IMG/VR virus record: IMGVR_UViG_3300036715_003906
Coordinates: 186,001-250,000 of that record
Length of the DNA: 64,000 nt
Direction: 5' to 3' (one strand)
The notes under the pieces are model-generated. The model was not told the DNA's origin, ran no database searches, and was given only the letters and a program-made list of their open reading frames with translations. Of this stretch, positions 18,321-18,849 are shown one piece after another; position 1 is the stretch's first letter, and each line of letters begins with the position of its first letter. The position numbers and the translations under genes are program-made.

Positions 18321-18849
18321 AGCGAGCACCGGGAGTCGAACCCCGCTATTTACGACCAAAAGTAGATGTCTGGGTATGGCAGTTGGGGCAGAGGAATCGC
18401 AGGTTTGTGGCCTCATTGTTATGCCGATCCCCGTCTCTGTGGTCCACCTGCAAAACCAAGGGCTTGCCTTGCCACTCAGGACCTTGGCTGCACTCTGCGC
18501 ACTGATGCAAAATCCCCGTTGCCAGCAAAGCCCTGCGAAGTTGATGAGGCTTGCAACGATAAGGCCCAGCGGACTCAAAAACCTGAGCGGGAGCCTTCTG
18601 CTTCCCAGAGGGCTGTCCCGCTGCCCACCCCTTCCCCTCCGGGATGTGGGACCGATCGATGCCGGCGGAGAGGATTCTAGTTTTGAGGTGCTCGTGCTGA
18701 CTCCCGGAGAACGTCGTGACTCCGAGCTTCCTCAGCACTGCGCTGATCGAGGCACTTGATTTAACAGCCTCGGCAATGGCTTCGTCGGTGTACTTGACTG
18801 GCATCGTATGGTGCCCATAGCACATGCCTTACCGTTCGGCCATGCCCGC
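18321..18849 (-). pseudogene. tRNA-Gly-type scaffold with anticodon arm replaced by an HNH ORF
   Basis: 5' GCGGGCA TG GCCGAACGGTAAGGC at 18849-18826; 3' GGGTTCGACTCCCGG TGCTCGC T at 18345-18321. Confidence 0.75.
18346..18804 (-). CDS. HNH endonuclease nested in tRNA scaffold
   Basis: CAEC, LQVDHRDGD..NN...NLRFLCPNCH. Confidence 0.9.
   Translation of the reverse strand: MPVKYTDEAIAEAVKSSASISAVLRKLGVTTFSGSQHEHLKTRILSAGIDRSHIPEGKGWAAGQPSGKQKAPAQVFESAGPYRCKPHQLRRALLATGILHQCAECSQGPEWQGKPLVLQVDHRDGDRHNNEATNLRFLCPNCHTQTSTFGRK

Follow-up and report, generated by a model that had tools for sequence, protein, structure and literature searches.

Phage tRNA clusters are already documented as sites of homing endonuclease genes, and both SegB of phage T4 and the F-Tfl HNH enzymes of phage T5 are homing endonucleases encoded in such clusters (PMC2330249). 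SegB recognises the DNA of transfer RNA (tRNA) genes, with the T-loop motif GGTTCRANTCC, and drives the inheritance of itself and of its neighbours, while the segB stop codon lies at a tRNA processing site (PMC2330249). Homing genes in phage tRNA clusters are usually described as lying between tRNA genes. Here, we describe an HNH endonuclease gene that stands between two pairing parts of a tRNA, at 18321-18849 on the minus strand of a 64,000-nucleotide (nt) stretch of viral DNA (hereafter the window; bases 186001-250000 of the 251,474-bp IMG/VR virus record IMGVR_UViG_3300036715_003906; 68% GC, completeness estimated at 53% by CheckV). A first-pass annotation of this DNA had left the choice between a homing gene that destroyed a tRNA and a messenger RNA capped by tRNA halves, in the manner of transfer-messenger RNA (tmRNA). 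In our reading, a free-standing HNH homing-endonuclease cassette has very probably been inserted into a tRNA-Gly-like gene in the array of a jumbo phage, leaving that tRNA dead.

The T5 genes hegA, hegC and hegD (enzymes F-TflI, F-TflII, F-TflIV) resemble the window gene in being free-standing and in sharing the strand of the tRNAs in whose cluster they lie. At their ends, the heg open reading frames (ORFs) abut tRNA genes or run into them. HegA and the window protein are homologous, the nuclease half of the latter being 34% identical to HegA over 90 amino acids (E=2e-16), whereas hegC and hegD have only marginal similarity. Unlike the window gene, no heg gene in the T5 annotation stands between halves of a single tRNA that pair with each other. 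At its 3' end, hegD does overlap a tRNA-Gln(CUG) gene recorded as a pseudogene, and tRNA-Ser2 has its end overlapped by hegC (L106:2345-2420 and 2398-2979; NC_005859 29344-29978; L-numbers here are labels of fetched loci, chiefly those carrying members of the HNH family); these overlaps may have been left by an earlier collision of this kind between heg and tRNA genes. T4 SegB differs further from the window enzyme, as it belongs to another nuclease superfamily, GIY-YIG, and its gene lies between two complete tRNA genes and splits none.

Homing ORFs that sit directly in a host gene form a second group of comparable systems. The gene mobE in nrdA of Aeromonas phage Aeh1 is reportedly such an intron-less homing gene splitting its host gene. 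In the Pseudomonas phages ZC03 and ZC08, HNH genes split the genes for ribonucleotide reductase and RNA polymerase, again with no intron or intein (PMC5418858). These "genes in pieces" share with the window a homing ORF placed directly in the gene, but their split protein products can reassemble, whereas the window tRNA cannot function without an anticodon arm. Bacterial group I introns, finally, occur in tRNA anticodon loops, some with a homing endonuclease ORF, as in the case of the cyanobacterial tRNA-fMet and I-Ssp6803I. Insertion in the anticodon region and carriage of a homing ORF are common to these introns and the window, but no ribozyme core was found here and there is no room for one. 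A full-text literature search found no description of an intron-less homing gene inside a tRNA gene, nor of its recurrence in one HNH family. Here, members of a widespread HNH family, PHROG 10822, are seen to have entered tRNA genes repeatedly; the insertions centre on the anticodon, cost the tRNA 3-26 nt and bring no intron to repair the damage. This provides a concrete mechanism for turnover and pseudogenisation in phage tRNA arrays, and explains "orphan" tRNA fragments and odd calls of the tRNA finder ARAGORN beside HNH genes.

Anatomy of the split tRNA

The split unit belongs to an array in which ARAGORN and Rfam identify 32 tRNA genes (15206-25667) and a tmRNA (14303-14654) on the minus strand, and all tRNAs of the whole record fall inside the window. 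Its 5' part (18825-18849, minus strand) consists of the acceptor strand GCGGGCA (18849-18843), U8 and G9 (18842-18841), a D arm with a 3-bp stem and a 9-nt loop (18840-18826, GCC-GAACGGTAA-GGC) and A26 (18825). When the stretch is cut there, this part aligns to positions 1-28 of the Rfam tRNA model (13.5 bits), the 3' side being truncated. The 3' part (18321-18345, minus strand) holds a T arm (18345-18329, CGGGG-TTCGACT-CCCGG) with a single G:G mismatch in its stem, the acceptor strand TGCTCGC (18328-18322) and the discriminator U73 (18321). Between the two parts lie a 20-nt leader (TGTGCTATGGGCACCATACG; 18805-18824) and the HNH gene (18346-18804), which begins with ATG at 18804, encodes 152 amino acids and ends in a TAG (18348-18346) that abuts the T arm, so that the ORF takes up the whole insert except 20 nt. 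The observation of an HNH ORF between pairing tRNA parts is confirmed, as are the other points of anatomy in the first-pass annotation: an acceptor, a D arm and a near-intact T arm around a 152-residue HNH ORF, about 20 nt from D arm to ATG, and a stop codon against the T arm.

The two acceptor strands pair at 7/7 positions, with six Watson-Crick pairs and one G:U, in the single register set by the D arm and the T arm, for which we estimate a chance probability of ~1e-3. Both halves occur once in the window, and none of 100 shuffles matched. These results bear on the possibility that the halves never belonged to one tRNA, and are either remnants of two tRNA genes truncated around an intergenic HNH gene or chance look-alikes. 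Such errors do arise: the intron mode of ARAGORN makes chimeras in tRNA arrays, and a loose scanner for tRNA halves gave ~0.28 chance hits per locus at 6/7 pairing. Here, however, both pieces are orphans, and the unit that they delimit takes up precisely one slot of the array, between a tRNA that ends 3 nt ahead of it and a tRNA-Cys gene that starts 5 nt beyond it. In a census of orphan T arms the 3' part has its 7/7 partner upstream; the chance of a 7/7 partner with T8 in the 350-nt upstream region is 0.068, and the partner here also has a proper D arm and the right spacing. The same architecture is moreover verified by empty sites in two relatives (see below), and we regard an origin from two tRNAs, or from none, as highly improbable.

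No complete cloverleaf can be drawn from these parts. Standard ARAGORN and the Rfam tRNA model make no tRNA call at 18321-18849, and the 3' strand of the anticodon stem is absent between the halves; the replaced part corresponds roughly to tRNA positions 27-48, i.e., the anticodon arm and the variable loop. In intron mode ARAGORN reports the unit as "tRNA-His(atg), 449-nt intron", with the anticodon AUG on a forced stem of three Watson-Crick pairs, one G:U and one U:U mismatch. This call was rejected as evidence and carries no weight, because the same mode made 23 calls in 40 shuffled 64-kb windows (~0.6 per window) and many chimeras in real arrays. Annotators should be aware that intron-mode tRNA finders report such loci as intron-bearing tRNAs. 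The mismatch in the T stem may reflect early decay.

A true tRNA intron would require that the insert be removed from the RNA, by a cryptic ribozyme overlapping the ORF or by proteins of phage or host, to give a functional tRNA. The insert does occupy a central position, as do bacterial group I introns in tRNAs. Against this, group I and group II intron models have no match at E<=1 within 14000-26000, the insert has only 20 non-coding nt, and the one anticodon stem available is that forced by ARAGORN. Bacteria are not known to possess tRNA splicing endonucleases. The earlier statement that a group I or II intron has no room here is upheld.

The leader forms a small 4-bp hairpin, GTGC-TATGG-GCAC, directly after the D arm. 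An alternative in which this hairpin is the anticodon stem, still in place, and the ORF occupies the variable loop was considered and disfavoured, as the TGCTAT box recurs in the leaders of other cassettes. The hairpin is more likely part of the cassette than of the tRNA because TGTGCTATGGG stands where other cassettes have TGCTATAyT, an extended -10-like box, and judged from these motifs the 20-nt leader is probably cassette sequence. A TGCTAT motif upstream of the start codon was found in 5 of 59 loci (L017, L029, L035, L037 and Enterococcus phage iF6), compared with 1.9% in the control.

The type of the interrupted tRNA can be judged from what is left of it. U73 and the first three pairs of the acceptor stem (G1:C72, C2:G71 and G3:C70) are Gly-type features, and the best matches of the split piece among 826 phage tRNAs are tRNA-Gly genes, making a tRNA-Gly type plausible. 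The D arm is identical to that of the adjacent tRNA-Cys at 15/16 positions and is also found in a tRNA-Ala of a Nocardioides array; it is not type-specific, because it is common to Gly, Cys and Ala array tRNAs. An identity as tRNA-Cys or as a class II tRNA, read from the D arm, was dropped on the same ground. The tRNA-Gly label of the first-pass annotation is thus backed by the discriminator, the first three pairs and the best matches, but not by the D arm. The Nocardioides array, in N. speluncae (NZ_QEOO01000011; L107:2656-2924), consists of tightly packed tRNA-Leu, tRNA-Ala and tRNA-Gly genes; its tRNA-Ala has the D arm and T loop exactly as in the split tRNA of the window, and the array unit may be of phage-like origin.

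Filled and empty insertion sites

Split tRNAs were sought in 93 loci as an orphan T arm and acceptor strand downstream of the HNH gene with a 7/7 orphan partner upstream; the loose scanner mentioned above was rejected and only 7/7 orphan cases were retained. The census picks four loci, namely the window, L035, L037 and Enterococcus phage iF6, so that the search for further HNH genes between tRNA halves, proposed with the first description of the locus, has added three. Both acceptor strands and the T arm are kept in all four.

Two of the four can be compared with an empty site. L035 is a Schiekvirus-like Enterococcus phage whose flanks are 98% identical to those of phage PEf771, where the two halves seen in L035 adjoin each other as an intact tRNA-Ala(UGC). 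In L035 all tRNA stems are intact and an insert of ~0.8 kb, nearly all of it ORF, lies in the anticodon loop between tRNA positions 33 and 37, such that ...CTACC-CT and AA-GGTAG... are kept and the anticodon TGC is replaced. The intact tRNA-Ala allele is present in ~27 Enterococcus phages, and the L035 insertion is a singleton. Phage iF6 has an intact tRNA-Ala and is split in the next gene, the counterpart of the PEf771 tRNA-Pro(UGG): the first 16 nt and the last ~31 nt of tRNA-Pro flank a 791-nt cassette encoding a family member of 252 amino acids, and 26 nt are missing, comprising the 3' part of the D loop and the anticodon arm. This insertion is unique among 29 Schiekvirus records, the 28 sister phages keeping an intact tRNA-Pro. 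The window locus is built like iF6, its cassette being preceded by acceptor strand and D arm and followed by T arm and acceptor strand. The L037 insert opens with a leader that has TATAAT-like boxes and a Shine-Dalgarno sequence; next come the HNH gene and an entire tRNA-Tyr, after which the 3' half begins. The phage collection yielded no empty site for L037.

Two family members are thus polymorphic for presence and absence at a conserved locus (L035 against PEf771 and others, iF6 against 28 phages), and family members insert in tRNA genes, deleting tRNA nucleotides. The anticodon is the sole region missing in all four split cases, a pattern that would fit resection, to a variable extent, from a break close to the anticodon-coding DNA. 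For the intron explanation, the intact stems of L035 are a favourable point. Exact excision, however, could not restore the tRNAs of L035 and iF6, because the anticodon triplet is replaced in the one and 26 nt are deleted in the other, and in this respect both sites depart from group I tRNA introns, as no splicing could make good the deleted nucleotides. Group I and II models also have no match at E<=0.01 in ten related loci, L035 and L037 among them. The chance that a functional tRNA is spliced from the window locus therefore seems close to negligible, and the insertions of this family are destructive, intron-less and centred on the anticodon. Together, iF6 and its sister phages form a cultured test system for the recognition of tRNA-gene DNA.

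The HNH nuclease and its residence in tRNA arrays

The window ORF is an intact gene of the HNH (His-Me finger) endonuclease type. It matches PHROG 10822 "HNH endonuclease" (E=1.6e-39), lacking the C-terminal extension of the long forms, and the Pfam families HNH_3 (E=6.4e-5) and HNH (E=2.2e-3), both just under the gathering score; there is also a weak match to I-HmuI (PDB 1u3e). Its motifs follow the order CxxC ... DH ... N ... CPNCH, and all residues that are invariant in an alignment of 11 family sequences are present (C102, C105, D121, H122, N134, C139, C142 and H143). In that alignment, DH 121-122, N134 and H143 make up the catalytic residues of a beta-beta-alpha-metal site, and C102-x-x-C105 and C139-P-N-C142 those of a structural zinc site. 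The N-terminal region is taken for a putative helix-turn-helix DNA-binding part, and the start MPVKYT agrees with the N-termini of relatives.

The family to which this protein belongs is at home in tRNA arrays. Relatives were found by tblastn in 227 phage records, and IMG/VR holds 233, of which 80 were fetched for a survey of their neighbourhood. Genes for tRNAs lie within 3 kb of the HNH gene in 76 of these 80, and the gene has the same strand as the tRNAs in 66. Among five phage records inspected, the four closest to the window protein (Vibrio D69, Pseudomonas phiPsa347, Citrobacter Maleficent and Rhodococcus Francesca) have the HNH gene wedged between tRNA genes, often with zero to few nt to spare; in the fifth, Streptomyces phage EGole, it lies among protein genes on the opposite strand, with a tRNA ~1.1 kb and a tmRNA ~1.2 kb away. 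The PHROG 10822-type HNH family is a family of nucleases dwelling in tRNA arrays. Among the immediate neighbours of its members, tRNA-Leu, tRNA-Ser and tRNA-Tyr are weakly enriched (p = 0.045-0.07).

Several observations on these loci can be added. A GGTTCGA-like motif, with the letters of the tRNA T loop, occurs within ~25 nt upstream of the HNH start in iF6 (L105:1425-1456), L035 (2940-2970), L029, L039 and L050, and could be a remnant, a binding site of the nuclease or a product of chance. In L037 the tRNA array of the HNH-bearing phage contig contains a bacterial-type RNase P RNA (1822-2118; class A, 112 bits, above the gathering score). At the nucleotide level, HNH genes of Bacillus, Streptomyces, Klebsiella and Rhizobium phages match the DNA of its HNH motif (3352-3455) with 74-79% identity, which is unusually high for hosts so distant. 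In L085 a GOLLD RNA (2083-2546, 200.8 bits), with a tRNA embedded at 2146-2217, stands beside the HNH family member in a phage tRNA array.

In composition the window gene differs from its surroundings. It has a GC content of 0.573 and a GC content at third codon positions (GC3) of 0.647, compared with a GC3 of 0.92-0.93 in the two adjacent resident genes and a median of 0.88 in the high-GC3 frames of the genome. Because of this difference the ORF looks foreign and its insertion recent, with base composition that would not yet have been ameliorated, and a recent insertion would explain why the halves still pair. The first-pass annotation had held that the retained pairing favours either selection or a recent insertion; the GC3 value speaks for the latter, and selection is without support.

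Selection on the halves is what the tmRNA-like alternative would involve. In that scenario RNase P, together with the enzymes of 3' processing and CCA addition, would act on the acceptor/T minihelix, the HNH message would be released from the array transcript with both ends protected, and the halves would be kept because expression of the nuclease needs them. Several features are compatible with it. RNase P and the CCA-adding enzyme accept acceptor/T minihelices; the minimum free energy and centroid folds of the 529-nt RNA keep an 8-bp terminal stem and the T hairpin; and the retention of both acceptor strands and the T arm in four out of four split cases is expected. As no sigma-70 consensus promoter or terminator was found within 17000-21000, the HNH gene probably rides on the array transcript as a passenger, and in the capped form it would depend on transcription of the array and on processing. 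A tRNA-like acceptor/T-arm domain around a coding sequence is also the arrangement of tmRNA, of which a genuine copy lies 4 kb away in the same array.

The evidence on the other side is broader. The 529-nt RNA has no excess folding stability over shuffled sequences (z = -0.01), and the T stem of the window carries a mismatch. Downstream of the 5' half, the cassettes of L035, L037 and iF6 each supply a TGnTATAnT box as well as a Shine-Dalgarno sequence of their own, so that their transcripts need not include the 5' acceptor strand; in L037, moreover, processing of the whole tRNA-Tyr between the ORF and the 3' half would sever the cap. An enclosing tRNA-like domain is not conserved in the family, as ~89 of 93 loci (~96%) have no halves, and both Enterococcus insertions are singletons among ~29 sister phages. 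Compared with tmRNA, the window locus has no G3:U70 alanine identity pair, no pseudoknots, no resume codon and no tag ORF, and encloses a normal enzyme gene of 152 amino acids; the Rfam tmRNA model finds nothing in the region beyond a 13-nt T-loop hit. The idea of a tmRNA-like message under selection has thus found no positive evidence, and we consider a tRNA-capped mRNA improbable. Seen as a model for the family, landing in the anticodon arm may conceivably, but with little likelihood, provide a ready-made module for processing and stability, i.e., a CCA-tailed mRNA with a tRNA cap that would be a convergent cousin of tmRNA. For the natural history of phage tRNA arrays the locus has moderate value, and its value as a candidate new RNA class is low.

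The other half of the initial choice, a homing gene that destroyed a tRNA, is strongly supported by the two pairs of filled and empty sites, the residence of the family in tRNA arrays and the foreign composition of the ORF. Under this destructive homing-gene insertion, a short leader and the 152-residue ORF would have taken the place of anticodon arm and variable loop. During co-infection with a phage bearing the uninterrupted tRNA gene, the enzyme would cut or nick near the anticodon-coding DNA, and repair would copy the cassette into the broken genome with the flanking tRNA sequence serving as homology; the carrier itself would be immune because the insert disrupts the target. The halves would still pair since the insertion is recent, and not since they are needed. 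Loss of the tRNA would be cheap and tolerated, because the phage keeps tRNA-Gly(GCC) and tRNA-Gly(UCC) genes 200-400 nt upstream of the split tRNA, with the host presumably supplying the rest.

Four points weigh against this account. First, the comparison with uninterrupted alleles that had been proposed succeeded for the tRNA-Ala of L035 and the tRNA-Pro of iF6 in their sister phages, but yielded none for the window tRNA: exact IMG/VR scans for the 5' half and for the 3' half, allowing repair of the mismatch, gave 0 hits. Second, identical copies of both junctions occur in three samples (X1-X3), and the contigs of the two other samples among them (X2 and X3) show no difference there; the phage population has thus adopted the split form, and the insertion is not extremely young. 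Third, the cleavage activity of the enzyme and its target are inferred. Fourth, selection, rather than a preference for target sites, could be the reason why each of the four split cases has kept its acceptor strands and T arm. An exact IMG/VR scan for a 30-mer of the neighbouring tRNA-Gly also gave 0 hits; the neighbouring peptidase gene led to relatives with only 45-64% identity, whose arrays show no synteny; and a metagenome scan with the neighbouring 179-residue ORF gave two distant loci in which the region is absent. A relative from a freshwater run (X4), ~94% identical, aligns over 16800-18271 and 18852-19656. It has zero depth over 18408-18809, and its alignment stops at the edges of the region, 18852 and 18271, which hints that the HNH gene is absent there, although these contigs cannot prove absence. 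X4 also lacks the peptidase ORF, 19656 being joined to 20690 with 5 other letters between, from which it follows that the ORFs embedded in the array vary between strains.

Neighbouring features of the array

The tRNA upstream of the split unit (18853-18929, minus strand; Rfam tRNA, 45.3 bits) has an 8-nt anticodon loop, read by ARAGORN as "tcgg", and ends 3 nt before the split tRNA. In intron mode ARAGORN gives it as tRNA-Pro(cgg) with a 3-nt insert, and it could be a frameshift-suppressor-like or a damaged tRNA. On the downstream side an intact tRNA-Cys(GCA) (18243-18315, minus strand; Rfam tRNA, 67.5 bits) begins 5 nt past the split tRNA. A second aberrant tRNA on the minus strand is called by ARAGORN as tRNA-??? 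with a 2-nt "anticodon" (24611-24684), and at 24544-24681 on the same strand the full Rfam tRNA model spans 138 nt (28.8 bits), resembling a tRNA with an insert of ~65 nt. Weak matches to the tRNA-Sec model (23-33 bits) lie at 23388-23461, 21677-21759 and 25247-25319 (minus strand), in gaps of the array that are empty in ARAGORN, and may be decayed tRNA genes.

Protein-coding ORFs among the array tRNAs include a metallophosphatase, a ClpP-like protease, a small conserved ORF and a papain-family peptidase. The last (19685-20653, minus strand) is a cysteine protease of the Peptidase_C1 family (E=2.8e-13), with relatives in other phage contigs of 300-450 kb. The ORF of 179 amino acids at 17469-18008 (minus strand) is conserved only over its first ~76 residues (57-62% identity in relatives); the remainder resembles out-of-frame read-through, and the real gene is probably short.

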